A DNA stretch of 64,000 bases from the NCBI GenBank assembly GCA_977016875.1, contig CDRNST010000310.1, positions 1,488,001 through 1,552,000 on the forward strand, written 5' to 3'. The position numbers were made by a program, and so were the translations under genes. This stretch comes from Pavona decussata. Its lineage: Eukaryota. The notes beneath the pieces were generated by a model. The model saw nothing but the letters and a program-made list of their open reading frames with translations, made no database searches and had not been told where the DNA came from. Below are positions 6,057 to 64,000 of the stretch, piece after piece. Positions within the stretch are counted from its first letter, which is position 1. Every line of letters begins with the position of its first letter.

Positions 6057-7847
6057 TCAAGCGTTTTTACTGTCACTAGCTTCTTTACCAGGCACTGAGT
6101 TGTTATTTGAATCAAGGGATGCATCCCCCCTTGCTTGATTTACCGATTCACTCTTAGCTACATTATCATCTCCGGAATTGACCCCATCTTTGCCTTCCTC
6201 AGATTCGTTTGAGTGGTCTTCAGATTTTTCAGGTTCCGAGCTAGAAAGTATGTTGTCATTATTTTCATCAGCATCAGTTGTACTAACTGCTTTATCGGCA
6301 GACGAAGATGCAGGCAATACATCGCCATCTTCGTTCTCTTGCTCGCTCGGCGCTGAATCATCGATTGCTTTCTTGATGTGAGTTTCAGATGACCCAGTGG
6401 GATTGTCGCTGTCTTTTAGCAATTGACGAGAATTTTCATTCTTGTTGGCACTTTCATCAGCTGGTCTTGATTCAGATTCAATTTCGGGTTCGTTGTTTTC
6501 CCAAGCCTGGAGTTGCGATTTGTCAAGCTTATCCGCGACTTGCGCCTTCTTAGAATCATCTTCAATAATTTCAACTTCATCTTCATCTTCAGTCCTTTCA
6601 TTTTCTTTCCTTTCATCTTGGTCTTCTTCGTAGGAAATTTTCGTCCCTGCATTTTCGACTTGCTCAAGCACTTCCTCCATAACTTCCTCTGCCGGAAGTA
6701 AATCAATCGGTTTCTCTTCTTTCGTCTGGCGCGTGTCATTAACTTGATCTGCTTTCTCCTGCATCAAGCCACTGGCCTTAAACACATTCCCAACAGTTGA
6801 GGTGTCGTCCTCGTCGTTTTCTGCTTTCACCAGGGATACTTCTCCAGGTACTGGGGTGTCATCTTCAAGCCATCCAGGTGGCGAGGAAGATATTGTAAAA
6901 TTATTCATACTTTCAACGTCCTGTGACATGCGTGGCTGGAGCAGACCGTGAACAGTCGGTGGGTCTGGAGACGAGTTGCGAATGACGTCGCGCGGTGATG
7001 TCAGGGACGTGATGTTGGTAACACGTGACTGATCACGTGATTGCTCGCTGCCTTTGCTTTCAATGTTATTTTTTGTTACTCGCGGTTTTCGCTTCGCCAC
7101 GTCGTTTCTTGGCAGTCGACCTGTGTTGGTCAACTGGCCGTTGCCTATCTGGGGTAGAAACGGCGCTCGAGGGCTCCTTGTAAGCGAAGAGGCGCCTCCT
7201 CCGTAATTCATTCGTTTAAAAGATCGTCCCCGTTCCACTGCTACGTAATCTCCTCCGGAGATTAAATCGGCCGGCGTTAAGATAAGTTTACCATCTTTGG
7301 TATACAGTGCCGCAATAGCAGCCGCCAAGAAAACATGTTCCTGTACGATGTTCAAAATCTGTTCCATGCTCTGCTGCAATCGCTTTTGCAGAACTATTTT
7401 CACTTTGGGTTTGAACACGTCTCCATTACAAAACACGTAAAGTATTTTCAAATCACGTTTTCCCCACTCATAATCCATCTTATGCCTTCCCTCCGTAACA
7501 AAGACATTTTTCTTGGGAGAATTGTTCGTTTTACGAGGGGGACGCGGTTTTGAGACGCCAAGATCCGCATAGTTCAACTTTTTAAATTCCTCTCTCCCGG
7601 CAGCCACGTACACACTCTTGTTTCTAATGCTTTCAAGGTTCTGCACCGGCCGGCCACCGATCGGCGTGCAGATTTTTCGTACCGCGTTAAACGCTGAAAT
7701 GTGCGCCGTCACCTGGTCATACAAGGCTTCCATTGTCCGTATGTGCCGTCTGTTGATAACAAGCGTTTTACCCAGAAAGTTACGGTTTCCATTCTTGTAA
7801 ACTTTAACAGTGACTGTTGGAGCGAAAGTTGACGCCACTGCTGCCAT
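6057..7847 (-). CDS. DCDC2: Doublecortin domain-containing protein 2-like, 596 aa, single-exon CDS
   Basis: Two DCX repeats (VYKNGN..AVRKICTPIGG..YVAAGREEFKKLNY; VFCNGD..LYTKDGK..YVAVERGRSFKRMNY), the DCDC2-type motif VFKASG..KPIDLLPAEEV and an acidic tail. Acceptor ttcccag a few nt upstream of the ATG implies a 5'UTR intron. Confidence 0.88.
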   Translation of the reverse strand: MAAVASTFAPTVTVKVYKNGNRNFLGKTLVINRRHIRTMEALYDQVTAHISAFNAVRKICTPIGGRPVQNLESIRNKSVYVAAGREEFKKLNYADLGVSKPRPPRKTNNSPKKNVFVTEGRHKMDYEWGKRDLKILYVFCNGDVFKPKVKIVLQKRLQQSMEQILNIVQEHVFLAAAIAALYTKDGKLILTPADLISGGDYVAVERGRSFKRMNYGGGASSLTRSPRAPFLPQIGNGQLTNTGRLPRNDVAKRKPRVTKNNIESKGSEQSRDQSRVTNITSLTSPRDVIRNSSPDPPTVHGLLQPRMSQDVESMNNFTISSSPPGWLEDDTPVPGEVSLVKAENDEDDTSTVGNVFKASGLMQEKADQVNDTRQTKEEKPIDLLPAEEVMEEVLEQVENAGTKISYEEDQDERKENERTEDEDEVEIIEDDSKKAQVADKLDKSQLQAWENNEPEIESESRPADESANKNENSRQLLKDSDNPTGSSETHIKKAIDDSAPSEQENEDGDVLPASSSADKAVSTTDADENNDNILSSSEPEKSEDHSNESEEGKDGVNSGDDNVAKSESVNQARGDASLDSNNNSVPGKEASDSKNA

Positions 7848-13884: not shown

Positions 13885-16800
13885 ATGAAAGTATGTTTTC
13901 AGATGTCATTAAGATCACACGCTAGTTGCCATTACCAGACGAAAAATAGGTTCATATCGATTTTTTTCAATTACAGGAGTCAAGGAAAGAAGAAACAGGT
14001 AAGTTTGCCCATAAGCAACTGAAATGACGTGGGATCGATGTGTGCAAAAGATTTTCTACCGTTGCAGAATTAATACAAGAAAGGAACTACTCTTTAGTCG
14101 GGAAACGCAAAAATACCGGGAATACTAGTCATAAGGCATTACATATTTGTTTACGTTAATTACATCTAAAATGCAGAGCTTGTTTCGTTTTCAAGATATC
14201 CAATTTATCGATAATTGTTCTGGGATCCCTGTGACGAAATCATAATTGATAAGAACATGCTCTATAGCTTAAGGCATGCTCATCAATCTGGAGGCAACAA
14301 GAGCCAACTACATTCCAATCCTAGCAGTACGCAGGATGTTTGTCCAATGAACCTAGTTTAATGGCCTTAGCTCCCACGAGTCTCCTGTAGCTCAGTGGTA
14401 GAGTATCCGAACTGGCAATTGGAAGGTCTTAGGTTCGACTCCTGATAGGAGCACTCGGATGTTTTTCCCGAGTATGCCTAGGCCTGTGTCACTTACTGAA
14501 TAATACAGAATTCTCATTTATTCACCAGGCTTACAATGTTCCATCACATTTATTCCAAGAGCCCACTAGTTTTTTTTCCTGGTTTCCCCCTCTAACATCC
14601 CCATATTTAACCCGTTTTTAATCTCTTTTTGAACTACAGATGACCCTGAGTATCAGAGGGCTTTCACTGCCCTGGATGAACTCAAGCTTGCTTCAAGGAA
14701 ACCATTTTTCAAGGAGCACTTTTTGCAGGTAATATTTGCGACATTCGTCAACTTTCTCGCTGAATCAGCGTATAACGGTCCATCAATCCGTCGAGATCAA
14801 GTCTTTATCATTGTAACCTAGTCCAAGGGTCGAGATGGAGTTGATAAATGTACGGACATTTTTTTAGCTGTCAGTTAACATTTATGGGCTATGGTTTTCA
14901 GTTATCAGTTCAAAACCGAGGCATTTCTCAGGTGAAGATTAAAATTTTGGCCAATCCAATTGTCAGCTACATTTTTAGTTAAACTTCATCCAGACCTCTG
15001 GTCTTGCTCAGTAGACTTTTTAACCTTTGTTAAAAAATAATGATTTCAGTTAGCAAATGTACTGGACAAACGTACGTGCCCTGGCCCCCTTCTTTTTGAG
15101 GAAGGAAAGAACGCATGGAAAGGTGGACATTTTGTTATTCTGAAACATTCACGCTCTGGGCCTTTTCCTCTGGCCGTTTTTTCCTCGGTTCCTGAACAGC
15201 TTGAAATTAGCATGAAGTAACTAAAACTTTAAACATTCAATACTATATCCACTGCTCATATAGTTCAGTCTGTCTCCCTGTGTTTGCATGCTATTTACTT
15301 GTCTCAGTCCATCCATCTTATTTGTTTTGCACGTAAAAGGCAGGGGGATAACTCGAAAACCGCAAGGTTCATTTATTTCCCCGCTTACTCGACTTTTTAC
15401 TCTCATCTCATGTAATTTTTTGTAATTTGCAGTAGCTTTTGATTATTAAGTGTCAAGAGAGTAATTTTTAATGAGTCTAATAAAAAATCCATTTGTTGTT
15501 GTTGTTGCCATCTAACAAGGCATTCTACATAGATTTGCCACTGGGATAGACAAATAGTTAGAAGGCTTTTTCAGTCAACACGTTGGTCATATGAGACTCT
15601 CCTTCTAAAGGATTTCGTACTTGAAAAAGGATTTCGAATTGGTTTGGTCCTTGCAGTAATATTTTGAATTGATAGACCAAAACTTAAAGAAAGTAGGTAC
15701 TCACCCTTATATTGAACCTCTAAAGAAGCAAAGGAGTGCGTACACCGGTCCACACAGACTGACACTCGGACTCAGTGGGAAATTGACTTCTCGATGAAAA
15801 GGACTTTTTAATTTTTTATCAATGCAATCCAACTCTAACGCAGCTACTTTCTCGTCAGGATGACACATTGTTTTTTATGGAATCCGAAGAGGAACTAAGA
15901 AACTTTCTTGTGAAGGTAAGGGTGATATTTTCAATTATTCTACCATTAAACAAATTTGGAGCATCACTGTATAAGCAATTAGAGGCACGGCATTCGGGAT
16001 GGAAAACCTGAGATTTTAGTGTTAAATGTTAATATAAATTGTTTAGATTTTAGCTTCAGGTATTGTAATTAAACTTAGCATTTTGATTCCATATTTTTGT
16101 AAACCTCATTGAATTTTTACCGCGGATAAAGACAGATTACTTGGTTGCTTCCTCAGTTCCTTACAAGTAGCTACTTACTAACCGAACGTGTCTCCGGCAA
16201 ACGTAGGGAACAAAGATCCTTTTAACTCCGATCTGCCAATTGTTTCAATTGTTACAATGTAGTTTCTAGATTGCTAGAGTCAGTTGCGGTAACATGTCAG
16301 GAGAATTTTTGACTCACCTATCCTTGACGTCCGTTGTTGTACGCCGGGGAAAGTATTTCACTAAGTATTTCCAAGTAAGTAGCTTCTGGGATAATGTTTT
16401 GCTTCTTTCAAGAAACTTTCCGTCTGTTCTGGGTACTACATGTGGACTTTATTTTCATGTTGTGATTTCAGTAGACACTTCAAATAGGAATGAAGTATCA
16501 TTAAAGTATTTGACCAGGGATTTAATGCATGGTACGCCATCTTAGTTGTGTAGGCAACTTGGGCAGTTGCGAAAAGCCTGTCCGTAACAGCAGTTCATTA
16601 TGAAAAAGTGGGCAACACAGAGTTAAAGTGGATTTGCCTGTCCATCTAAGACCAGCTGTTAGAAAAGTTCCGACACGAACAGAAAATGTTCAGACTTGAT
16701 CATTTCATGTCTTGTTCGGGAGCCCCCACCCCCCCCCCCCCCCCCTCAAAAAAAAACAAAAAACTATCGGTAAGTTGAAAAGGAACGGAGCAGTAACAGG

Positions 16801-36323: not shown

Positions 36324-39300
36324 ATGGTAAGCCTAATTTTCACAAGTTTGTAAGCCTCATTCTTTTTTAATACAGTTAACAAGTCACCTGAGCAGGATAA
36401 ATGCGACTTGTCGTTTACTTTCAGTCATGTTTTGACTGGGGATTCAGGATTCCTAATGCTTTGTTTTCAATGATCTACTGATTTAGATCGCGTGATTCTG
36501 TTTAGATCTCGTCTCGATCAGTAGCGAAGCTCCGTTTAATCATAAAAATGGAACTTATTGGACCTATAGCGGAGTCATGGCATCACGATACACAGTAAAA
36601 CGGATACCATTTCCGGGAAAATGCTGGAGTTTCTACGAATTTCTAATCGTTTACATGTGTGTTTACTATACAAAGCACTAACAGTTGTTTGTTCCGATTC
36701 TTTTCAACTTTTATTCCCGCGCTGAAAATTTTACAAATACCATCTAATAAATGGATACAAGGCGGCTGATGAGATGCCGTTATTTGTTGCGAAGTAATAT
36801 CAGGTTGAAACTGAAAGATATTAAATTCGAAAAGGATCGAACGACCCCAGGTCAACAAAGCTCTATTCACTAGCGCATCCATGCTTGATGTCGCATGTAC
36901 AAAATCAAACATCGAAGGTTCTGTTTCGGTAACTCAAATCCACTGCTCTTCGAAATAATAGAGAGTTTTAGCAACGACGACGGCGACGGTGGCAACGAGA
37001 ACGTAAAATAAAAAAAACAAACAATGGGCTTAATAACCAAAACAACAACTCTGCACGTGCATTTCACTTTCAGTACATTTCTTTGCCGTCACTGCACGAC
37101 TAGGAAGTGACATTTCCCGATGGGACGTTTTATGGAGGACGTAAACACACGACGACGAATTTTTCTTTCTCTTTCTAAACTTATGTGCGGTCTAAGAATT
37201 CAACTCCAGGAAATTTCACCTACATTTTATATTTAAAGCGAATTGGAATTATCGCGAGGATGTTTCAAACAACGCAAATTCATTTTAATAGTGACAGTTT
37301 CGCCAACGTCGCCGTCGTCGTTGCTCAAGCTCCCTAAAGTCGGAGTTAAAAGGAAGTCAGAGAAATAACTCCTCTAGCAAATTGAACAAATTACAAACCA
37401 GAGCACTCAAACGCGCGGGCAGCTGTGCGGGCCACTCAAGGAGACAATTTAAGCAAACAAGAAGCTGTACACAGCTTGTACTCGGCGCACCTTTAACAGT
37501 GGTATTTGTAGGTTTCAGTTGTAGTTAGGTTCTAGCAAAAGGCGCAAAGCGGCTTCATTTGTGGCAGATCGTTTTGTGCCAGTTTTAAAGACATTACAGG
37601 TGATGTTTGAGAAAAAAATGTAAAACAATGCCTCCATTTTTTAATGATTTTCTAGGAGGAACAAGGATCTTCAGATTCAGGTATGATTCATTTTTGTTTT
37701 CAGAGAATGATAAGTGTAGTCTATTTGTCATTTTTGACTTGAAGATTCAAGCATTCATGTTTACTGGGCTCTAAATCAGATCACTTTTAAGACCTTTTAA
37801 TGCTTAACCGGTCAGGGATAGTTTGAATCATGATTGGTACATAACTTAGAGATTTCTTATCACAGCTTTCTTTTCATTACATATTGGTAAAACACTGATG
37901 AGTTTGTAGGTGTATCGGAAATGTTGTCGATTTTCCTTATAATGGGTGCTAAGCGTGATCATTCATTCATCATTGTGGTGAGAGTAACAACAGCGTTATG
38001 TCTCTAGCAAAGATTCTCAAACAAATTAGATGTATAAAGGTAGGTTAGCTACCATACCCTTCTGATCTCTTCTGAAATGTTATGCATTCATTGCAGATGA
38101 TCCAGAATATCGGAAGGTATTTGCTGCCCTGGATGAACTTGACCTTAGCTCCTTGAAACCACTTTTCAAAGAACAACAGTTCCGGGTAATTTCTCATGTT
38201 AACTAATTACCGCTCGTTACTTACTCTGCCACTCTAATTTTCTTGCTGGTTAGGAAAAATAAAGATGTAATCTAGAATTTGCTATTATCTATAAAAAATT
38301 TTTTTCTTTTCTTTTCCACGACCCCTCTCCCCCTTCCGAATTGCGCTTGAACACCCAGCACAAACTGTCACTAATGGGTTTTTCCACATCCTGATCAGGC
38401 CATAGTTTTTTTGTGCATGAGCCCCACTTCAATCCCACCAACACAGCTCGGCTAGTCATAAAAATTGACTGTCCCTTGATAAAAATCTGACGAATAAAAT
38501 TATTGTTGCCCTGGCAAGCCTGGCAGAGGGGCAGGTTAGATTATTTAATTTTCACGCAAAAATTGTTGAGGATGTTGAAGATGATTTCTGAATTGGTGTC
38601 TTCATCATTCGCTGTCAAATATGACGTAACAACAATTCCATTTTATCTGTAACCAAACCGTGGACCACCTTCGTCTTAAACTTACAATTATCTTTTAACT
38701 TTCATTTCAGGATAAGACTCTGTCTTTCATAAAATCAGAGAAAGACTTAAGACTTTTTCTCAAAGAGGTAAGATGTCCTCGCTCCAATATACCCTGGAAG
38801 AAACGATTTTTAAACATTTTGTACCCTATCAAAAGGAAAATGTTTCTCATACAAATTAAAAAGCAGAAGGCAAATATCCGTCAGCAACAATTTATACAAT
38901 TTAAGTTGTGTGAAGGTAAAGCGTAAATATATATTTTTAGCCAAGCCTAAAAGCGGAGCTCCACAGTTTCTTTTTTCATAGCATTTATAGAAGTCTGCTA
39001 TCTTATGAACGTAATAACCTTACAAGTTCCGCATCTTTTCTTGTATATTTTTTGTGTATATGCAGCAAACTGCTCAGCAACAATAACAATTACAATGTAA
39101 TACAGAGGGTAAAATTACTGAATGCTGATTGTTGTAACAGAGGGTATTTTTTCTTAATTATTCTTTCACCGAGGGCAAATTACTCACTACTGATTGGTCG
39201 AGCGGCGAAAATACTCACTCCTGATTGGCTGAGCACGCCAGTTCTGCATTTTGTGCCCAAAAAAAAACGGGTAAGGTTCTTTGGAGTTCGACACTTTAAG

Positions 39301-42300
39301 TCGGGTTGTTTGTACTAAAAATATTACATGGAAATCAAGTTGAAATATTCCATCACATTTAGTTCAGGACGGTAAAAGTTGGGAATGAACAACAATTTGA
39401 GGGTCAATTTGAAGGCCAGTCGTTTCCGCTACCAGTACAAATTACTAACCCTCGGTGAATTTTGAACTAAGTACATATGACATTGCATGGCACATAATCA
39501 GTGAATTTAATCAGCAGTTTGTCCTTGCAGGATCTGAGATTGACTTTGGGTCCAAGCATTGAGTTTAGTCGACTGTGGTTTGACAAATACCATGGAAATG
39601 AAGGTAAGACATCCCCAGCTGCGAAATTACCGTGACGGTAGTATAAGGGCGCATTTTTTGGCCCTATTCCGTTATAAGAATTATCGGAATAGACGGTATC
39701 ACGTCAAGAAAGAGGTTGATGTTGTTCATCGTGGTAGATACATTAATAATAAGTGTATTATCGTTTGTCTCACGATGTAGTCACTTTTAGATGTAAATCG
39801 CGTAGTTTCGACTTCTTACTGCTAGCCTTCATCAGGCGATGAGGTCGACTGGTTACGCGGCACCATTTGTGCCACGATGGTCCGCTGTGATTGGTGCATT
39901 TCGATCCCCATTGTTCAGGCGAGAAGTTTTTCCCATGGCGGTCCGCTGTTGTACCATTCTCCTGTTGTGTTTTTTGACTGTGGGCATCCACGCTTCGGGA
40001 ATTTCAATTCCATTTTCCCCGTTGATGTTATTAGGGTGAAGTCTTATGTGGGTAGCTTCCTTGACCCTACGGGTAAACCAGTAAGAGTCTTGATAAATAA
40101 ACTTTCATGTTCCTTTGGGACCTACGTCTTTTTTCAGTATGAGGAGGATAGTATTCTATCGTTTTTATTTTTAGGAGTGTTAGGACTAATTTTTTGGTGG
40201 CATTTCAGAGACGTCATATGCCATTCAAGATCGAGAAAAAATGAGTAAAAATCTCGGTAAATCAGCGCATCAACCGCTCAAACAACGAGTTTTAATTTAA
40301 GAGTTGAAGTCCCAAAAGGTCGAACGGCGTGCAGATTCGATTTTTGGTACATTCCTTTACTTGAATTGTTTTCGTGCGACGTATGACTTAGCCTTAAACT
40401 TGGAGAACAACCAATTGACCATTTACGCGCAAACTGGCAAGACAGAGAAAACGCTTCGTGTTGGAACAGATTGGATTGCAAAGTATTTTCATGATGTGTT
40501 CTGAAGCGTAACCTTTCTTCCTGGCGGTATCGAAAGGTTATGCTTCTGATTTCCTCTTTCTAGTTAACAACAGCAACAACCTGAACACAACCCCTTACAA
40601 ATTTCGCACATTAAGACGGGCTTTGTTTATGTCTCTTTACCTGGGCAAGTAACCAAGCTGTAAAGGCTGGCTTGGTGCTCACCCACTGTAAAACATGTTT
40701 AAATAGTAATTTAGAATATGAGTTTTCGATGAGGTTAACAATTTTAACTGAAGGCATGTCTTAATTCGTTGTACTGCAGTGAGAACAACAGACCAAACAA
40801 AGAAGAAAATTAAAAGCGACAATGATGTTCAGGTGCCAAAGGAAGGTGAGAAGCATTCAAGTGCATTACTTAAAGAACCAGTGGTCGTTGATGACGGGGG
40901 CCAAAAACAGAAAGTCGATGGACGAATACCTACACAGTACCACCCCGAGATGGTGGATCCTACGAGACAAAAACCCAGCGTTTGCTCTGATATCAAGGGT
41001 AAGGAAGATGAAGAGAGAGTAATTGAGATATTGGAAACTCAGACCGTGGAGGAAGATCAAACTGGCAGGCAGTCTATGGAGACTAACGAACTAAACCAAA
41101 CCGAAGCACTCGCTAGTAGCTCAATTGGGCCGAAAGATGACCGGATCAATCATAAACTGAAAGGTAAATCTAACTTGAAAAGTGCCATAGAGTGAGATGG
41201 ATACTCCACTTTTTTTAAACCCTTTTTGTACTTTTGCTCACTTTAATTCGCCGACGAGACTGAAATTTGATTGCCGGCCACATATGCTCCTCACACACCT
41301 AACCTGTTCTCTTCGTGGTCTGTGAGACATAAGGCCCCAATTGGTCGCATATTGTATTTTGCCGACTAGATTACTCTTCTCTGTGCAGCCAAATGTGAAT
41401 GATAGAATACATCTAAGGCTCCTGTGAGCCAACTCGTGGACGCAGAAGTGAATAGTGATTACCGTAACGCCTTACTCGCATCAAACTACGTTACATACAA
41501 GTATTCGTAGACGCCATGCGTGTGACGCCGCTTAGATTTCTTAGCCCTTCCCCTCAGCTAGATTAGGCTTCTTGAATACTTTGGGGCAATGCTCCCTGAG
41601 CTTTTGAAACGTTTCATGAGTTATGTATTTTTGAAATAAGTTTAAATTTTGAAAATTGTTTGTAGCCTTTGGGATGGTTGGCTTTCATCGGCGAAAGAGG
41701 AGAAGAAGAAGAAGAAGAAAAAAAAGTTTTATTTGTCAGCCCCAAGGCAGGTTTGAAACCGAACCCTCCGACGCCAGGGGTATTCACCAAACCACTGCGC
41801 CACACATGTACGCCAGCTTTAGGAGAGATTAATTTTTGTATTTAATAATTATTTCCGGTGTTTAACTATTTGGTAGCCGTGGCGCAACGATTTAACAGCC
41901 AAATGACTTCGGACCCGGCCAAAGAAGAACACGCAAATGAACACGGAACACCCTCAGACGTTTCTCCATCGTATTTTCTCCTTCCGTTTTGCGCGAAATC
42001 CCTGTTGACTTGGACGATAATCTCGATCTACTTGAGCCTTTCAATACGGCGCCTAGCCTTTGTCCACAAAATAAAATCGTACGAAGACTATCATACATCG
42101 GTCGAGTGTTCTTTAGGCTATTTCTTTTAATTTCGAACTCCAAAAAGAGTGTAATTTAATTGAAGAAGAGAGAGTTTTCCATATTTGCTAAAAGTTTACG
42201 ACACATCGATGGGACGATGGAACGACCGAGCGAGTGATGTTTCCCCACATCATGATTACTCGATCATTGCGCATGCGCGCATTAATGAGTTAAAAACGAG

Positions 42301-45300
42301 GATAAGTACGTAAACGGCAAAAATAACAGCACTGAACCAACAAAACTCTTGCTGGAGTATGTCCGTATTCAAACGCAATTATAGTGGAATTCTCTTTGAC
42401 TTGATGATTTCTGTATCAGCCGCTGGTAAATCAGACTAACCATTTTTCCTTTTGTTTGTTTCTCATGAAAATACAGGAAAAAGTACATCGACCAATTTGG
42501 ATTCTCAAGATTTCAGTAATCAAGAGGACGGAGCCACATCAGCTGTAAACAGCAAGAACCTTATTTTCGTGACGGGCGACAACAGTAGTATTCAGGGAAA
42601 TACAGCTACTGTAAATGAGCCCAGTGAAATATCCAAAAAAGAATGGGAAATGGCCAAAACACCTGAGGAAGAAGCGGGTGATACTTCAAGCCAGCAACCC
42701 ACCACACAGAGCAAATCGAAAAAGAAGAAAAAGAAGAAGGCATCGAAGTCTAGAGAAAATGCTGAAATGAAAGAAGAAGAAGAAGGAACGACTCCTTTAG
42801 AAGGTATCGCTCATTGTCAATCATTGTTCCCAAAGAACGTAATCTGTCAGTCTCGCCATTTTAAAAGTATTTTTTGATTGATGAAATGCTAGAGTAGAGG
42901 ATCATACAGAAACTCAGTTAGTGCTAGGTTATAACATGACAATGACACCCTCAGTGCCTGTATATTGTCGGCTTGGCGTGATCCTGTTGAAGGATTCTGA
43001 GGGAATTGGAGGCCATAACTGTGTATAAAAGTGGGAAAGTCAATGCGATGTTGCCGATTATTGGGATAAACAGGATACGCCTATCACTGACGTACGTTCT
43101 AATTTTATTCTTACAATAAAGGAGTGGTTTTTTTTTTAGTTTGTCGCTCTTCCTTTAAGAAATAAAGTGGGATTATTATGACTGCTGTATATTGACAGAG
43201 TTTTTATTATTTGTAGATCAAGCGTCAATGGCTGTTGGTTATATAACAACCTCAGCAACAGCAGTAGCGTCAGAAGCAGCAGACGTTACACTTCCGTTAG
43301 ACAACACTGATGACGCCATAACGTATTCACAAGTCTCTTCCAAAGATGACAAAGCGAAGGGTGGCATTGACCTTTCAAGTAATTATGCAGTTAATCTTTT
43401 TGTTTTCATTTATCCCAGATCGTTCATTTTGGTACTCAAACTTAACTTTTAAATTCATGTTTGGGTTGTTGTTGAAATTCATCTTCACGGGAGCAGTAAT
43501 GAAATAGACTTGATTGCGATGCGCTTCTGTTTCCACAGTTCTTTCCTTTATGACCACTTTCTGGAGCTAATTGACCTTATTCCAAAATGGCTACTATTTT
43601 AATATTCTTTTGTTGGTATTTAAATTAGCCCTTCTTGCCTCGTTCTTAAGCTGAAAAATCAAAAGAATATTTCACCTTGAACGAGGCAAGAAGGGCTAAT
43701 TTGAATACAAACAAAAGAATATTGAAATGGCAGCCATTTTGAAAGAAGGTTTATTCTGAGCACTGAAACCACTGTTACGAGATACAGGTTGAAATCCCAT
43801 AACGACCGCATCGCTAAGTGGAAGTTGGGTGCCTGCGGTATCCAGGAGCTTCCACTATTGGCAGGCAGTCCCTAGATTGAGACCGCTCCAATGGCTGGAA
43901 AATCCTGGCAAACCAGCCATGAGCCCCCAGGCACCCGTCACACTGATTTAAGAATTGGTTCATGCTTTTAGCTGTGCGTATATCGAGTTATGGATGCACT
44001 TGGGAAGTTTGGATAACACGAGAGAAGCGTAAGAGTTGCTTGAGGCGTAGCCTAGAGCAACTCGATATATCTAGCTTCTGGAGTGCTCTCCAAACTTCCC
44101 AAGTGCATCCATAACTCGATATACGCACAGCTAAAAGCATGAACCAATTCTTTTATAACACGATGACAACAAAATGGTGCGCGGAAAACAGGTTTTATTT
44201 GTGACTGATTACAAAGTTCTCTCAATGCGCTGTACAGATAAACAAAGGTTCTTATTGGATGGTTACAAACACACCGCAATGGTATGGTCTGAACGAGACT
44301 GTTTCATCTGAAATTGTCCATTAAAATTTGCTTCTTTGTATTAGTTTAATGCTAATGAAAATGCCGACAAACAAGTTTCCAAGCCGACAGAATGTTTAAG
44401 TACTCAAATGTTCAAATTAAAGTTAAAGGGGGGAACTAGGGTTTCGATTCATCATGACGATTACGTTGTGTACGGTACAGTTGGAGAAGATTCGATTCCA
44501 AGAGAAAAGTCGGGTAGTTCTTCACTATTTTTGTCCATTTCTGGGGAAACTTTGTAAAAACTAAGCGACGGAAACCCGACTTTGTCTGATTTGCACCCGT
44601 CATCTTGTGGACGCACGGCCGCGCGAATGTTGAGAAATGAACCATGATGACGCTAGTAGGAATTAGATAGGGAAGCACGCCCGCTATAATATAAAAAACA
44701 GTGGAAAAGACAGAGGGAGGGGGAAAAACAGAAGCTACCTGGCACCAAAAACTGCCACGCAAACGCTGGCTAGGCCTATGCAGCAAGCACGTCGTACATT
44801 CTGTGAGCCCGTGGACTCCTGGCGCATGTGCCCAAAGAGACATCCCTGGTCACGGAGCAACCCTTGCGTTCTTTGTTGTTAACTCCGTTAAATTGCATTT
44901 AACTACATTTAAAGCCCCAGACATAGTATCGTCAATGACCTCCTTATATTTTTTGTGTTACTAGTTGGAGGAATTTGTTTATATATCAAGGCATTTTATC
45001 TTAAGGGTCCATTTACCTACCTTTTGATGCCGTTTCCAGGGAAATATCTGTTGTCTATAACTCATGCAGCACATGCTTAGTCATATCAAATCAAATTTGG
45101 TCAATATTCATGTTTTTGGACCACGCCCATAGTCACGCGACCCAAAATATAAAATGGAGCAAACACATAGTAATTTGTCTTTTTTTTTCAAGAATTCCTT
45201 GTATAATACTGTTTCATAACCATTTTCGAAAAACATTACTGTTACTGTCAGTAAATACTCTCTACCACGGACATTGACTCAGGGACTTTTCTCTAGCACT

Positions 45301-48300
45301 GTGCCATTCGGTTACTGAACGCCTCAGAGCCACTGATTTTGCGGCTTTCATCTTATGAATGCGAGACAATTTTGCCATTATGTTTATTTCTTAACGTTCT
45401 TTTGTTCAATTACTAGGTCTAATAGAATATATAAAGTTTTCTAAAGAGCATTTTGTAAAAGCCGTCTCTAAAATCTATGCATTTCTTTCTCGTACTTACG
45501 GTTGCGAGCCAAAGAAGCTCTACGGTTGTCAGTCTAGAATATGTTGAAAGCTGCCCTGGAAAGCACTGACGTATTTAACCTGACAACGGGACGAATGCTT
45601 CACAAAATACTTGGCACCCAAAGTATTGTAGAAATAATCCATAGATGTCAGCCGATTTTATCTTTAAGCGCTCCTCTTTCTTTCTTCAGCTAGACATTTC
45701 CGAAAACAAATCTTCCCCAAAACAACATGTTGCGGCTATAAATTCAAACTTTGAAGAGAAGAAAAGCGCGCCAAATTTGTCGGTCGCTGGAACCGGAAAT
45801 CAAATTGTACTTGCATAGCTACCGTGTAACTTAGCAATGAGATAGGTAAATGGATCCTCAAAGGGGAAGTGCCATGGCATTTTGACCTCTTTTGTTAAAA
45901 AATGGTTAAATAAGGCCTTCCCTTAGCTACAAAACTGAATTCAAGAACAACGAGAGGAAAGAAAACAATTCAATTCTTGAAAGGAAAAACTCTTGGTCTG
46001 TTCTAACGCATTTTGGAAACAAATGATACTTCCGCTTTAAATGATTATTTACTTATTCTCTTGGCCTGTATGTTTGGTAATGCAGTGATATTTGAAGGGG
46101 GAATTAGGTGCTGGTGACTTTGGGGTTCATAAAGGATAAAGCTTATATTTCAACTCTTCTTTTTTAAATCAACTGAGGATGAACGGGTAAGGGATGGAAT
46201 ACTGCTATATTTTTATGCGTAAATGCGCGTCAAGTTTATGTTGTTTTCTCTGGAATTTGTTCAACTCACCATTTGTCTCGGAAATATGTTTCAATCAAAA
46301 TCCCGTGTGCTTTTTTCGACAGTTAACAATAGCGAAAACGCGAGGGAATACACATTTGCTGATGTCCATGATCGACGGAAGAGCACTGACCAAAATGGAA
46401 CCAATGCAGATTGTACCCCCAAAGAGGACCCTCTCCTCGAGGCCGAGGGCATTGTTGACAATCAGGACGAAACAAGAACAGTTGTGAATCAACTACACAC
46501 GAAAAAAGAGGCGGTAGAAGAAAAAGCAAGAAAGTCTTCAAACCAACAATCGAGCACACAGAGTAAATCAAAAAAGAAGAAAGACAAGAACTCTTCCAAA
46601 GGAACAACGGGAAGCACTGAAACCATTGACAAGTGCGCAGAAGAAACAACAAAAGTAGGAAACGAAGGCACGAGCTCTTTAGAAGGTATGTTATCTGTTA
46701 AATGCATCCTTGACATCATCAAATTACCATCTTTGTGTGAAGAGGACTCTTCCTTGCCCAAGATATGAAGCCCGAGATAAGCGCTTAGAGCAGCGATGTA
46801 TAAGCACTATATAGATATTATAATATTTTTATTAAACTCTTGTGAAGTTCTCGATGTTTCAGTGACGATATTTTTACCGATTGGGTTGGTGGTCCTTAAC
46901 AAACCCCTACTGTGGGCGAGATGGCCCACGGTCAGTCTGTCGTCTACCCTAGGCATATTGTTCCCGCTGGTATAGAGGTCATACACACACAAGCAAACCA
47001 ACTGAGGGGTGGACCTTAAGAATGAGACTTTCTTCTGTTGGGTGTCAACATTGAATGGATTTTCATTATTAATAGGTCAAGCAGCAGTGGCTGTTGATCA
47101 CACACCAAAAGAACCAGTAGTAGAAGCAACAGCAGATGAGTTTACACGGACAGTTGGAAACAACACCGCTGAAGCCATGACACATTGGGCTGGTGCACAT
47201 GAAGTCCCAACGGCAAATTATGGTAAAGATGTTACCTCCATTTCAGATGCCACTGAGATAGCAACATCTAGAAAAGAAAACGAAACGTGTCAAGGAGAGA
47301 ATGGTCAAGAGGTTGTGCCTTTGCTCGTAACTGCTTCTTCGAATACTACGATGCTGCAAAATGGGATGTCAGACCTGGACGTTAATAGAAACTTAAATCA
47401 ACGTGAATTGGAGGGAGAGAAAATCAGAGATAGAGCAGGAGACCAAATAAAAGATTCCAAGGGAGTTTGCAGATGTAAGTAAACTTTTAAAATAGTGGTC
47501 TTTGAAACCTCTTTTGCTGATCTTGGTTGGTTCATGGCCTATTTTGAATACACACCAGCAATAGGATGAAAAATTTCAGATTAAAAAGTTTAGTGTTTTT
47601 CCAAGTAGACGTCAGATGAAGACAAATGGACTTTCAGTTGATCATGGTCACCGATGAAATCTTTTTTTTACTGGCAGGTACCCCAAGGCCTCGCGGTGTC
47701 GCAGCAAGAGACTTTTTCTATGAACAAGGCTCTGTTTTGGACGCTGAAGAAAACAGGGAATTGGAGTTCAAGTCGCTCGCGAGCGCCCAGTCCTGTTCCC
47801 TTCCTTGGAAAATAATGGAAAAGGCTAAGAAGTTCATCTGTGCCTGTTTAAATGCCGACAGACGCGGAATCATATACTTTGGTGTTGGAGACAGTCTGGA
47901 GAAAGGTTCTAAGTATCAGCATGGCGAAATTTTAGGACTTGATGTAGAGCACATCAAGGATGACATCAATAAAGCCTTCCAAATTGTCCTTGATGACCAT
48001 ATCAAAAGCGATGCAGGGCCATTACAAAAAGGTGGAGAACAGAATTGTGTTAGCATCCACTTCGTCCCAGTTAAGAAACAAGGAAACCGTTGCAACCTGT
48101 ATGTCGTTGAGATAGAGGTCACTCGTGATTGGCGATTCTGCAAAGCCAGCATTTATTACTCTAAAAGCTGGATTGATAGGACAGGTGGACACCATGCTAC
48201 GACTGGAAAGAAAGCTTTGAGTGACTCTTTCAAAGTCAAAGATGAGTGGGACAAGGTTGCGATTCGTACCAATGGGGTATCTAGCTCTGTGGAGCAATTT

Positions 48301-51300
48301 GACGTGGACAGGCATGTCAGAAAACCTCTTAAAGAAAAGTACGAGGATTGGAAGAAGGCAAAGCATGGTAAATAGATATACCTACCCGAGTATTATTCTT
48401 TTTTTTTTTAATTACAATTTTTATTAGTCTCACTTGACACAGAATACAACATTAACAATTCTAAATACTACTTACACTGCTTACGACAATTAATAACAAT
48501 ACTTACTATACTATACCTAGCCTCTGGATCGTGGCGCGGTAATTTTTCAGAGGGTTGGATCGGGGCCAGGAGCGTTCTTTACAGGAACGTTCTTCACCGG
48601 AGGGGTGCTAGTTTTGTTTAGTAATATTCAAAATGATTTTTTACACTTTCGAGCCTTTTTTCTTTAGTTTACAGCGTGTTCAACCTGTAAATGTTATACG
48701 CTAATCATCGTGTCTTTTTTATATTTTTTACCTTACCACGTAATTGCTAACACTGAAACTGTATTTAAAAAGCGTTTTACCACTCTGCATTGTAACTGAT
48801 AAAGGTCTGAGACCGAAATGTTGTATTAAATTTTACTTGGTATGATATCTCTGTCATTTCGCCGTGTGTAAGTGATCTGTTTTTCGAGGTCACGATTTGG
48901 TTTCTGATATTTTGTATCTTTTGTTCATAGGCGCTCACGGGTTGACTGAAGGTAAGTCTTCAGGTATAATTAAGTCCAACCACCTTATATAAATGTTGCT
49001 GTCGTTTCATGTTACTGCAGCAATAACACCAAACTCTAAATAACTGGTGTAATGTCACAATCCTTTCATCGATTCCACAACACAGATCTTCGAATCGTGT
49101 CACAAGTTACGTATCTGCTGCACACGACACTTTCCATAATGTACTTCAAGTATGCACAGTCCAGAAAACTAGAAACCTAACGCCACGCTTAGTTACACGA
49201 CTCTTGCATTCACATTACTGACAACATCCTCCCCTTATGCAGCGTGGAGGTAATCAACGTCTGCATCAATGGCAGCAGCTCTTCTTGGAACTCTTCTAAG
49301 CTTTTGTCGTTCACTCGACTGCTCGGCTTCCATTTGCCTTGGCAGCGTAGTATCTGTTACCCCAAGTGGGTTGGTCTGGTTAGGGAAAACGGCTCCGCCA
49401 GTTTCGTAAAGACTTTAACTTTCGTTCCGATCCCCTAATCTCTTTCCCATTTGCCACTTTCCGTAAGGCTCTTCCTCCACGACAACTGTCACCACATCTT
49501 CCATTTCAATCAGTTAACCACATCTGGTTTAGGTTATCTCGTGATGTTCCCTCAGTTTTGATAAATATTCCCTCTTCCACTTGAGGCTGAACTATTCATT
49601 GGCTTGCTCAATTCCTTTGGAGAATCTTCCTTTTCAGTTCTTCGTTCTTCTCGAAACGAAAGGTAAGGCGACAGCACTGTCATTCGTCTCGTGTACATCA
49701 TATGCACTGGCGGCATGGCTTCTTCTGGGTCACCTTCTTCGTACACATATGTCAAAGGTCTCACGTTCAAGGTGCTTTCCACTTCAACCACTACAGTCAT
49801 AAGTTAGTCGTAGGGTCTTTCAAAGACATCTCTGTACTCCTTTCGCCATTCTCTCGTAGAATCCACTCCACCATGATGTTTCTTCAAATAAAATATCCAC
49901 ATACCTTATTAATTTCTCTATTAGAAAGGCTTGGACATCTGGGTGCTCGTAGAGTAACTGCAACTTGTTGCAGCTAATTTAAAGGTTTTTACACGACTGA
50001 ATATGACCAACTGAAGAACACATCTGCTTGGTATGAACCTCATGACACATTTAGCAAAAGTTCTTGTCTTTTAGTGACATCCAAATGAATGGCTCCGATC
50101 ACTGCATAAGAAACGAATGCCTTCCCTTTCTCACCCAAAACCGTATTCTAAGTTCTGTTGGTGACTCTATCACTCCACCATGACGAACACTCTTGTGGCA
50201 CTATAAATAACAATAAACAAATTTGTTAGATGCTGCTCTATCTGCACAAATGCAGGATGCCTTGCCTGGTGTCCCTCCACTGTTTGAGCGATTCTTCCAG
50301 GACATCGAATTACGCCATCTTCATCTGTGTATAGTCTGAGAGATCTCATTCAAGGTGTTCAAAGTTCCTTTAATCTTTAAAGCTGGACGGTGCTTCTTTT
50401 ACCTACGAATTCTCTACCCTTAAATTTCGCAACACAATACTCTTTGCTTTCTCAACTTTACACTTGAGTCTCTAACGAATCTGTACATGTAAGCTTGTCT
50501 CCCTGATTCCTCTCGAGTTCCTATCTGGCTTTGCACTGTCCCTTGCATTACTCGCTTCTGAAATTTCCAGAACATGTGCAACGAAATTTGTCACAGCTGT
50601 GTATTCTCAATGAGGAATCTTTATAGGACTCGACAACACCCATCCTAGAGAGGTCGAGATTGCTAATAGGCCCATTTCTCTTCCACTTACTACTTCGCCA
50701 TCTGTAAATTCCCGTATGAAACCGGTACTGATGAGCAAATCAACATCCGAATTCACTTCACACGGGCAAACATCTGAAAACCACAGTCTGCACAAGCATG
50801 GATGCACCCTTTTGGCCTCTTCTACGTGTTTACTCTGCAGGGCTTCAAATATGACATGCACTTTAAATACGTGTACTTGAACACTATTACTCCTTTCCTC
50901 AAAGAGGTGTCCGAATGGAATGTGACGGGTCCTCTCTACGTTATTATTGCTCTGGGCAAAGGTTCCAGGTTTCAGTTTCATGTGCTGTTTAACTGCAACA
51001 GATAAACTACCTTCTCAATGATGTAAGATCTTTGACTTCCGCATCAAACGTTTCTACTTGGATTCAAAGTCATTGGGCTTTCGTAAAACCACTTGTACAG
51101 CTATCACATTTCTTTTTGCAGAACAACTTGCGCTTATGAATTTACTTAAAACAAGGGGTGGAACCGGGTGCATTTCTTGGCACTTGGATGCCCGCTCTAC
51201 CTTCCTGAACCCTACTTTTAAATAAGGCTAGGTGATGGTCTGCACCACAGGTTCAGTTCTTCTTTGAATCACAACAAATGGCCCAGTGTCCATGTCCAAG

Positions 51301-62828: not shown

Positions 62829-64000
62829 TGCAACGACTCTGTGTCGTCGAATCCCGTGGAACAAACGCAACAACTTCCGCTTTGCCATTGTGAAGGCAAT
62901 TACAGCTGCTACAGATTACCAGATAGAGCAACTCCAGAGAATAAGCTATGACGAAAAGAACTTAAAATTTGCATCTCCTTGTTTAATCCTTGTTGATAAC
63001 TTCCCCGAAAACGAGACAAGGCGTTTAACAGAGAAGATCACGAAGAGGCAGATCAAATGTGTCATTTTGTCAACTTTTCCTATTGCGAACTTTAGTGCCA
63101 TCTCTGATTTCGACATGACGCCACTGAGACAACTAGATGAGAAGGAGATGTACCTCGTAAAAGATGTTTTGATCAACAACACAAGGGACAGCAAACGGCG
63201 AAGGGGTGCAGAAGAGGTTCTGGAAAGGGAGAAACGATTCACTTGGTTTGGTTTAGAACTGTTCGGACATGACTACAACAAGATCGAGGAAACACTTAAG
63301 AACCACATTCAGAGTACCTTTGACTTCCTGGGTGACTCTCAAGAAATTCATGTGATGGTTTTAAATTTCTGCTGTTTTCTCCATTTCTCCAGGGATGGCA
63401 GAGCTATTCTCTATCACCCAGTGGTCAGCGACTTTCTTTATGAAGCCAATGAGAAAGACCAAGGAAGACTTTGCATTAATGAAGCACATCCGCAAAATCT
63501 TTGGTGGACTTCTCCTTGAAGGATTCAATGAAACTAATGGTTACTAAGGCTGGAGACCAGCTCATTCTCTCGTCAGTGAGATTGTTAGGTCAAGGATAAA
63601 CACGGAAGAGACTGCGGTATGCCTACTAGAAAAGATCTACCAAGGAAAAGCCTATGTAAACAAGTTTTTGAAGGACCAAGTTTTGAATGTTTTCTTGGAT
63701 CGCAAGAGAGTATCCTATCCAGTATTGGTGGAGGATCAAGGAAAAGATTCTGGAAGTATTGATTCCGATTTTGAAAATGACGTCCTCGGTTTTTATGAAG
63801 TGAAAACGCGGTATTCTCCTTTCATTGTAGACATCGTTGAAGGGGATAACGGCATTCAAAGAGCCCTCAGATTGCTTATTACTATTTTCCAGAAGGCTTC
63901 TGAAATTCAGGAGAAGGTATACGCTTGGCAACAACTTTCAAGATTTATGAAATTGGTGCGAATGAAATGGACGAAAAGAATGAACAGCATCATCGTCTTT
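62821..64000 (+). pseudogene. SAMD9-like pseudogene fragment (NTPase region), closest to gene 1, runs off the window
   Basis: Aligns to gene 1 from about 24835 (GSSATTLCRRIPW vs GSGATTLCRRILW). It has a +1 frameshift near 63460, an in-frame TAA at 63545-63547 (TAC in gene 1), another indel near 63950, and no upstream exons. Confidence 0.88.

Follow-up and report, generated by a model that had tools for sequence, protein, structure and literature searches.

The human genes SAMD9 and SAMD9L matter to medicine, both in antiviral defence and in disease, and how they are regulated is poorly understood. SAMD9 has been described as a STAND NTPase under autoinhibition, from which a nuclease that cuts tRNA is released (PMC10246899, PMC12331169). 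In its tRNase domain, E184, E196, E218 and D241 are the catalytic acids, and the bases K198, K214 and R221 are essential (PMC12331169). SAMD9 homologues with an AlbA_2-SIR2-NTPase-TPR-OB core are described in Cnidaria in the text of a 2017 survey by Mekhedov, Makarova and Koonin, together with lineage-specific added domains in invertebrates (PMC5445408), so the family assignment of a coral SAMD9-like gene is not new. The likeness of the bacterial Avs proteins to SAMD9 has been argued to be convergence and not descent (PMC12680541). Here we analysed a stretch of 64,000 nucleotides (the window) from the 602-Mb assembly of the coral Pavona decussata (C310:1488001-1552000). It contains two multi-exon SAMD9-family genes on the plus strand, gene A (13885-28260) and gene B (about 38099-56652), followed by a pseudogene fragment. 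Judged from their sequences, both genes belong among the STAND-type NTPases of the SAMD9/SAMD9L family. Transcription and splicing of gene A yield one mRNA coding for about 2,400 residues. As a whole, the locus is best explained by SAMD9-type effector/sensor receptors in an old, recombining cluster, a reading to which we assign a probability of roughly 0.72.

The SAMD9-family core

Two long open reading frames lie on the plus strand of the window, at 23791-28260 (1489 residues) and 52207-56652 (1481 residues). A public-protein search with these frames returned hundreds of relatives, apparently all from stony corals, which identifies the window as scleractinian DNA, and the orthologues from Montipora and Oculina are labelled SAMD9-like by NCBI. 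When the window was searched by tblastn with full-length coral proteins, extra exons were found 5' of both frames, together with a partial third copy starting from 62785. Exons were used as separate queries, and the length of the gene A protein was obtained by exon arithmetic. A first-pass annotation of this DNA had proposed a tandem array of two intact, clearly diverged paralogues and one pseudogene in the same orientation. The analysis agrees with it: the two long frames are 56% identical end to end, the third copy is frameshifted, and all three lie on the plus strand.

In a phmmer search of all solved structures with the large exon, human SAMD9 was the sole match (E 2.8e-11). A profile built from 27 coral sequences aligned with human SAMD9 at E 9e-26 in two colinear stretches. 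Profile positions 36-424 correspond to residues 252-654 of the SAMD9 chain, which form the SIR2-like domain and the P-loop (E 9.7e-20), and map to about 23908-25075 in the large exon of gene A. Profile positions 1069-1201 correspond to residues 1284-1430, the OB fold in the last about 150 residues at the human C-terminus (E 1.1e-4), and map to about 27007-27405. The helical middle that follows the P-loop is colinear with human SAMD9 up to the OB fold, with 645 residues in the corals versus 630 in the human protein. In the P-loop, coral PGSGATT stands opposite human PGCGGTT, and PG-G-TT is invariant in all 27 sequences. The AlbA_2 exon passes the Pfam cutoff of 25.3 bits in both genes (PF04326; 29.0 bits in gene A, 35.5 bits in gene B), and its best solved relative is the human SAMD9 tRNase domain (7KSP, SAMD9 156-385; profile E 2.6e-7). 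The family membership claimed by the first-pass annotation is therefore supported by the phmmer, profile and AlbA_2 matches, and the NTPase falls within the SAMD9 family, its P-loop being aligned with that of SAMD9.

Several observations weigh against the receptor reading or narrow it. In the Walker-B-like stretch, the second acid of the human DD is Asn in the corals. In the nuclease, an invariant Lys (K48) occupies the column of the human catalytic E218, position 47 before it is acidic, and E184 lies beyond the alignment. The proposed TPR region between NTPase and OB gave neither a Pfam hit nor a significant alignment with SAMD9. Pfam found no SAM domain in the head, and a profile of the head gave no SAM match in the Protein Data Bank; on both large exons and the full-length orthologues, Pfam found nothing besides AlbA_2. 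The head of the Oculina orthologue was modelled by AlphaFold as four helices (pLDDT 71), and most of its top 42 Foldseek rows were SAM domains, with a best E of 1.4, TM scores of 0.5-0.67 and no significant row; the UniRef label for the homologous head of protein P0165 is SAM domain. Thus, of the domain order proposed at first pass, AlbA_2, SIR2-like, P-loop and OB are retained, TPR is without a hit, and SAM is weakly supported by the fold search. The PADLOC anti-phage models matched no family at E 0.1 in the large exon or the AlbA_2 exon. As for the gene models, the first two small exons of gene A are only predicted from the sequence, and the exon model of gene B, covering the SAM-like, AlbA_2 and large exons, comes from sequence comparison. 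In the literature on SAMD9 in corals, no functional study was found.

Because the E218 column is Lys and the acid stands one position earlier, the coral tRNase site may be shifted or altered. Four other aligned positions are invariant in the corals, with E29, K31, K44 and D71 at the places of E196, K198, K214 and D241, and K51 stands at that of R221. An alternative reading is that AlbA_2 binds nucleic acid without cutting it and that the output is another one, for example SAM signalling or assembly mediated by the Cys/His domain described below. The Lys and the unalignable E184 suit this alternative, as does the first description of AlbA_2 as a DNA/RNA-binding domain, which is given in the text of PMC5445408. 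However, at three of the four acidic positions an invariant acid is found at or beside the aligned column, and all three essential basic positions are basic. The exon is also under purifying selection, with a ratio of nonsynonymous to synonymous divergence (dN/dS) of 0.34 between gene A and its copy on a second contig, C443. A binding role without cleavage is thus regarded as quite unlikely, and the SAMD9-type nuclease is kept as the preferred effector.

Transcript and added modules of gene A

RNA contigs of four runs were compared with 16950-22949 of the window, and GT-AG joints were seen in runs X1, X2 and X5, which come from two studies. The RNA label of these three runs is a guess, and spliced-RNA origin was judged by intron skipping; since the contigs skip introns at GT-AG sites, they must come from spliced RNA. 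One X1 contig of 7151 nucleotides covers 17609-17940, 18172-18379, 19426-19584, 20245-20581, 21457-21804 and 22196-22899, and then runs on for 5048 nucleotides more. A second X1 contig splices 16971-17043 to 17236-17607, an X2 contig spans the gap between both X1 contigs, and the X5 contigs, from the other study, contain the last two joints. A 30-nucleotide loose end of the RNA contigs past 22899 leads to 23591-23609 and then to 23804 onward. At the other side, a loose end before 16971 matches 15884-15912, within the exon 15859-15915. By these joints and loose ends, the SAM-like, AlbA_2 and large exons of gene A are connected in one transcript, as had been expected at first pass.

Gene A has 13 exons, all on the plus strand, with a summed length of 7200 nucleotides or 2399 codons. 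The three SAM-like exons (14640-14728, 15859-15915 and 16973-17045; phases 0, 0 and 1) were placed by tblastn, reading frames and splice sites. Five linker exons follow (17238-17960, 18176-18382, 19427-19585, 20246-20581 and 21457-21804), defined by the RNA joints of X1, X2 and X5 and by open frames; each is a multiple of three in length and in phase 1, and together they encode 591 residues. The AlbA_2 exon (22196-22897, 702 nucleotides, phase 1-1) is covered by RNA contigs, and the 21-nucleotide microexon (23589-23609), which is seen in the RNA loose end, has counterparts in the C443 copies. Both are multiples of three in phase 1. The large exon of 4.4 kb (23804-28260) ends with the stop codon. 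All exons from 14640 on are open in the frame that their phases require and have canonical splice sites.

Upstream of these, two small exons are predicted. The exon 13977-13998 has the acceptor TTACAG and a GT donor, ends in phase 1 and is identical in the C443 copy. It is the counterpart of the N-terminus of the full-length coral orthologues (MESKNEET...), with CAG where the orthologues have ATG, and an in-frame ATG directly 5' of it was looked for and is absent. Unspliced read-through from the ATG at 13885 was rejected because it is in the wrong frame. A first coding exon of six nucleotides (13885-13890) is therefore preferred. It reads ATGAAA, has GTATGT as its donor, joins the next exon in phase and is also conserved in C443. 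The start at 13885 given by the first-pass annotation coincides with this predicted ATG.

The gene A protein has 2399 residues, compared with 1589 in human SAMD9, and the excess consists of the 591-residue linker and a tail of about 285 residues. This bears out the earlier proposal that two added modules lengthen the protein by 700-800 residues. Neither the linker nor the tail linker matched any Pfam family. The linker is about 30% identical to the Oculina protein, and its dN/dS against the C443 copy is 0.56. In the tail, the OB fold is followed by about 170 poorly conserved residues, the tail linker with a SYATAL motif (about 27406-27909 in the large exon), and then by a Cys/His domain of 110 residues (27910-28257). 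The length of the tail linker is not constant among corals: in P0007 and P0008, orthologues of gene A from other corals, a unit of about 130 residues is repeated two to five times in tandem, so its copy number varies between species, and three of the repeats of P0007 hold the motif SY[AS][ST]AL.

Eight invariant residues define the Cys/His domain, in the arrangement C-x2-H-x12-C-x3-H plus C-x2-C-x7-C-x5-H, and its AlphaFold model has a pLDDT of 88. It had no Pfam match, including the CCCH models, and no sequence match among solved structures. Fold searches gave a best E of 4.4 with Foldseek against the Protein Data Bank and no chain at Z of at least 2 in a wide VIA-align search; in the ESM Atlas, the search by shape reached TM scores of at most 0.33, and the search by features gave no usable match. 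When 1.84 billion representatives were searched with the profile of the domain, only 45 clusters were found, mostly SAMD9-like proteins or fragments of them. Among the weak matches were proteins of 120-340 residues that are homologous to the coral domain (hhalign 99.15%, E 3.9e-19). These have the canonical C-x7-C-x5-C-x3-H at the aligned place, and four of eight pass the Pfam zf-CCCH model (PF00642). The coral domain is thus best described, by sequence comparison, as a CCCH-derived double-zinc module. It is not called a zf-CCCH member because the homology holds by transitivity only, its own spacing is altered and PF00642 does not hit it. CCCH fingers occur in RNA-binding proteins such as ZAP and TTP, and the homology therefore points to RNA binding.

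The same domain also occurs without the SAMD9 core. Core-less proteins of about 520-550 residues with a C-terminal Cys/His domain were found in Pocillopora, Nematostella and the octocoral Xenia. Their head is homologous to the SAMD9-like head (hhalign 99.5%, E 1.2e-22), with rows of only E 0.1-1 against SAM domains, and they have the motif SY[AS][ST]AL in common with the tails of the A-type genes. In Pavona decussata the short gene lies at C171:945350-951019, and the intron positions and phases (0, 0, 1) of its SAM exons match those of genes A and B. The Cys/His domain is thereby present five times in this genome, in four SAMD9-like genes and in the short gene. A complex prediction for the SAM heads of the long and the short protein scored 0.01; the chains came from two species, and the score counts neither way. 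It is conceivable, though rather doubtful, that the SAM-like head, the SY[AS][ST]AL motif and the CCCH-derived domain form a portable anthozoan cassette, which is either free-standing or brackets a SAMD9 core. Through homotypic contacts or by binding the same RNA, the short protein would then serve the long ones as adaptor, decoy or regulator. The intron after the nuclease exon would be a recombination seam at which the effector module is joined to one sensor exon or another, so that haplotypes would differ in their sets of receptors.

Three further features of gene A were noted. Within 17609-17940, the assembly and the RNA contigs of X1 and X2 disagree at 14-17 sites and by a 3-nucleotide indel at the end of the first linker exon. 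The other gene A exons are identical between these contigs and the assembly, so allelic variation is concentrated in the linker. In the intron between 13977-13998 and 14640-14728, ARAGORN calls a tRNA-Ala(GGC)-like sequence (14381-14454, plus strand); the matching C443 intron has it as well, and it may be a tRNA-derived repeat and not a gene. In the coral metatranscriptome run X8, the summed contig depth reaches about 9000 and about 800 in intron segments 20750-21150 and 21950-22150, respectively, compared with about 15 on the exons. The many loose ends and odd joints of these contigs suggest abundant transcribed repeats at both places.

Organization and history of the cluster

The SAM-like exons of gene B (38099-38176, 38711-38761 and 39531-39602) were located by tblastn with the gene A exon peptides and the coral proteins. 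Its AlbA_2 exon (47678-48367), bounded by splice sites, is 66% identical to the gene A exon and 79% identical to the B2 exons of contig C443. A weak candidate for the microexon is present at 48931-48951, where 21 nucleotides lie between AG and GT and 12 of the 21 bases agree with the B2 microexon. The large exon of gene B (52324-56652) contains the Cys/His domain at 56293-56649. All these exons are on the plus strand, as is the pseudogene fragment, which was found by tblastn at 62785-64000 and continues to 65293, past the window end. The fragment derives from an A2-type large exon. It spans only large-exon residues from about 341 to 1185, is broken into at least four frame segments with in-frame stops, and is without 5' exons, tail and Cys/His domain. 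The upstream flank of the cluster holds an open reading frame of 596 residues on the minus strand (6057-7847) with two doublecortin domains (DCX, PF03607; E 3.7e-25), and its counterpart beside the C443 copy agrees with it in 94-95% of nucleotides. A retroelement remnant separates genes A and B: a reverse-transcriptase fragment on the minus strand at 30952-31356 (PF00078, E 3.4e-14).

The genome contains four intact large exons, those of A and B in the window and those of A2 and B2 on contig C443, in the same order. The large exons of A and A2 are 78% identical, and every other pair is 55-57% identical. Upstream of the cluster, C443 is colinear with the end of C310 over at least 85 kb at 93-96% identity, the doublecortin gene included. 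The pseudogene is 93.3% identical in nucleotides to the intact A2 large exon, the DNA after it matches the DNA after A2, and C310 terminates within a 5' region of the B2 kind, which has 92% identity with B2. From this colinearity, the pseudogene match and the B2-like contig end, the order is DCX, A, B, pseudo-A2 and B2-like on C310, and DCX, A2 and B2 on C443.

With odds a little better than even, C443 represents the second haplotype of this locus, which the assembler did not merge with C310, and the individual is heterozygous for a structural variant of about 40 kb. C443 would then carry DCX, an A-type 5' module fused to the intact A2 large exon, and B2, and the A/A2 mosaic would mark a recombination or insertion breakpoint between haplotypes. 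Besides the colinear flank, the pseudogene and the B2-like contig end, it fits this reading that the assembly contains the DNA of C443 beyond the cluster only once and that the 5' modules of A and A2 both adjoin the DCX flank. Alternatively, a large segmental duplication gave rise to C443. Against the haplotype reading, 4-18% would be an unusually large divergence between alleles, the flank (94-96% identity) is better conserved than the 5' modules (82-90%), and the far end of C443 is a multi-copy repeat, with no clean dovetail shown. Between the two, the haplotype is slightly favoured. The repeat at this contig end (C443:342001-346759) is an element of 4.8 kb with full-length copies of 99-100% identity on at least five other contigs (C256 twice, C476, C75, C543 and C300). 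This seemingly very young repeat probably caused the contig to break here.

Under either reading of C443, one 5' module with promoter, SAM, linker and nuclease precedes two very different large exons. Between A and A2, the linker and AlbA_2 exons have a synonymous divergence (dS) of 0.06-0.14, compared with 0.43-1.46 along the large exon (mean 0.77). The 5' introns are 86-90% identical, and the intron 22898-23588 hardly aligns. A similar 5'-to-3' gradient is seen between B and B2, whose nucleotide identity falls from 85-93% in the 5' part to 69% over the large exon. By these comparisons, the effector (5') half of the paralogues differs greatly in age from the sensor (3') half, with the break in the intron after the nuclease exon. 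In B2, which lies on the reverse strand of C443, the nuclease exon itself is present twice, at about 169270-169960 and 160625-161315 (50041-50730 and 58686-59375 in the reversed copy). The two copies are about 8.6 kb apart and 97.8% identical in protein, an internal tandem duplication.

In a tree of 123 coral sequences, A, B, A2 and B2 each pair with a different nearest sequence, presumably of another coral, to which they are 86-94% identical, and several other assemblies hold two or three family members per contig. For the folded domains, the pairwise dN/dS of A and A2 lies at 0.08-0.16; for the tail linker it is 0.48. With separate orthologues for each lineage and purifying selection, the cluster is old and maintained. 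The locus had been called expanding at first pass, a description that these values do not bear out and that is better replaced by old, maintained and structurally reshuffled. Its turnover is structural and consists of the pseudogene, module exchange and possible presence/absence variation. Two distant SAMD9-like genes were also found in the genome (C36:5501878-5503014 and C38:348651-349685; open frames of 2048 and 1287 residues); they are 22-25% identical to gene A over the SIR2-like/P-loop region and belong to other family branches.

The age of the cluster also bears on what the proteins do. Human SAMD9 also acts in proliferation control, and the coral proteins could be regulators of growth, stress or translation and not pathogen sensors. 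Old, conserved paralogues under purifying selection fit housekeeping regulation better than an arms race, and the one-to-one orthologues across corals, the low pairwise dN/dS and the expression in ordinary RNA libraries of several studies point the same way. However, immune clusters typically show what is seen here, namely paralogues side by side, a pseudogene, exchange of modules and possible presence/absence variation, and pairwise dN/dS leaves room for site-specific positive selection. The known functions of the family are antiviral (PMC10246899, PMC12680541). A purely regulatory role is thus considered unlikely, and the SAMD9-type receptor cluster remains the preferred reading.

Proposed mechanism and comparison with known systems

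From N- to C-terminus, the gene A protein is predicted to consist of a SAM-like head, linker, AlbA_2, SIR2-like domain, P-loop NTPase, helical region, OB fold, tail linker and Cys/His domain. By analogy with human SAMD9/9L, the NTPase/helical/OB part would restrain the nuclease until a nucleic-acid or infection cue frees it, after which tRNA would be cut and translation would stop. It is from this analogy that we infer an immune function, antiviral sensing and tRNA cleavage for the coral proteins. RNA recognition or partner binding is the probable contribution of the CCCH-derived tail. At the level of the cluster, the members are kept by purifying selection; in this reading, recombination combines the shared 5' effector module with one 3' sensor exon or another, and pseudogenes are left behind.

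Comparison with the cnidarian version shows which parts of the family are ancient: the OB end, the odd P-loop and the residues of the nuclease. Two natural experiments come with it, an RNA-finger-like tail that exists in addition as a free-standing partner gene, and a nuclease encoded by a separate exon next to a recombination seam. Coral biology gains an expressed candidate for antiviral translation shutdown, as judged from the human proteins, and a structurally variable, putative immune locus that could be typed in populations. As far as the searches reach, the CCCH-derived tail domain, the free-standing SAM-Cys/His gene across Anthozoa and the mosaic history are new. The added domains named in the 2017 survey are CARD, Death, PYRIN and FIIND; in a search of the text of PMC5445408, zinc was not mentioned, and the Cys/His tail, a core-less SAM-Cys/His gene and a mosaic history did not come up.

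Compared with human SAMD9/SAMD9L, the coral proteins have the same order of SAM-like, AlbA_2, SIR2-like, P-loop, helical and OB parts, the same atypical P-loop and most of the tRNase residues. In contrast to the human proteins, that of gene A is about 800 residues longer and has its linker between SAM and AlbA_2, encoded by five phase-1 exons; a tail linker and the CCCH-derived domain follow the OB fold, the E218 position is Lys, and the nuclease is encoded by an exon of its own. With the bacterial Avs9 and other Avs STAND anti-phage proteins, the coral proteins are comparable in their multidomain logic of an AlbA_2 effector, a STAND NTPase and a sensor (PMC12680541), whereas the bacterial proteins are without SAM and the PADLOC models do not match the corals. 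With the CCCH fingers of PF00642, the coral Cys/His domain shares a retained C-x3-H end, and its distant homologues are canonical; it differs in that a first site, C-x2-H-x12-C-x3-H, is fused to C-x2-C-x7-C-x5-H in one fold of about 110 residues. The locus also resembles the NLR clusters of plants and animals in its clustered paralogues, pseudogenes, recombination and possible presence/absence haplotypes, but unlike them it is built on another NTPase family, with purifying pairwise selection and stable orthologues.

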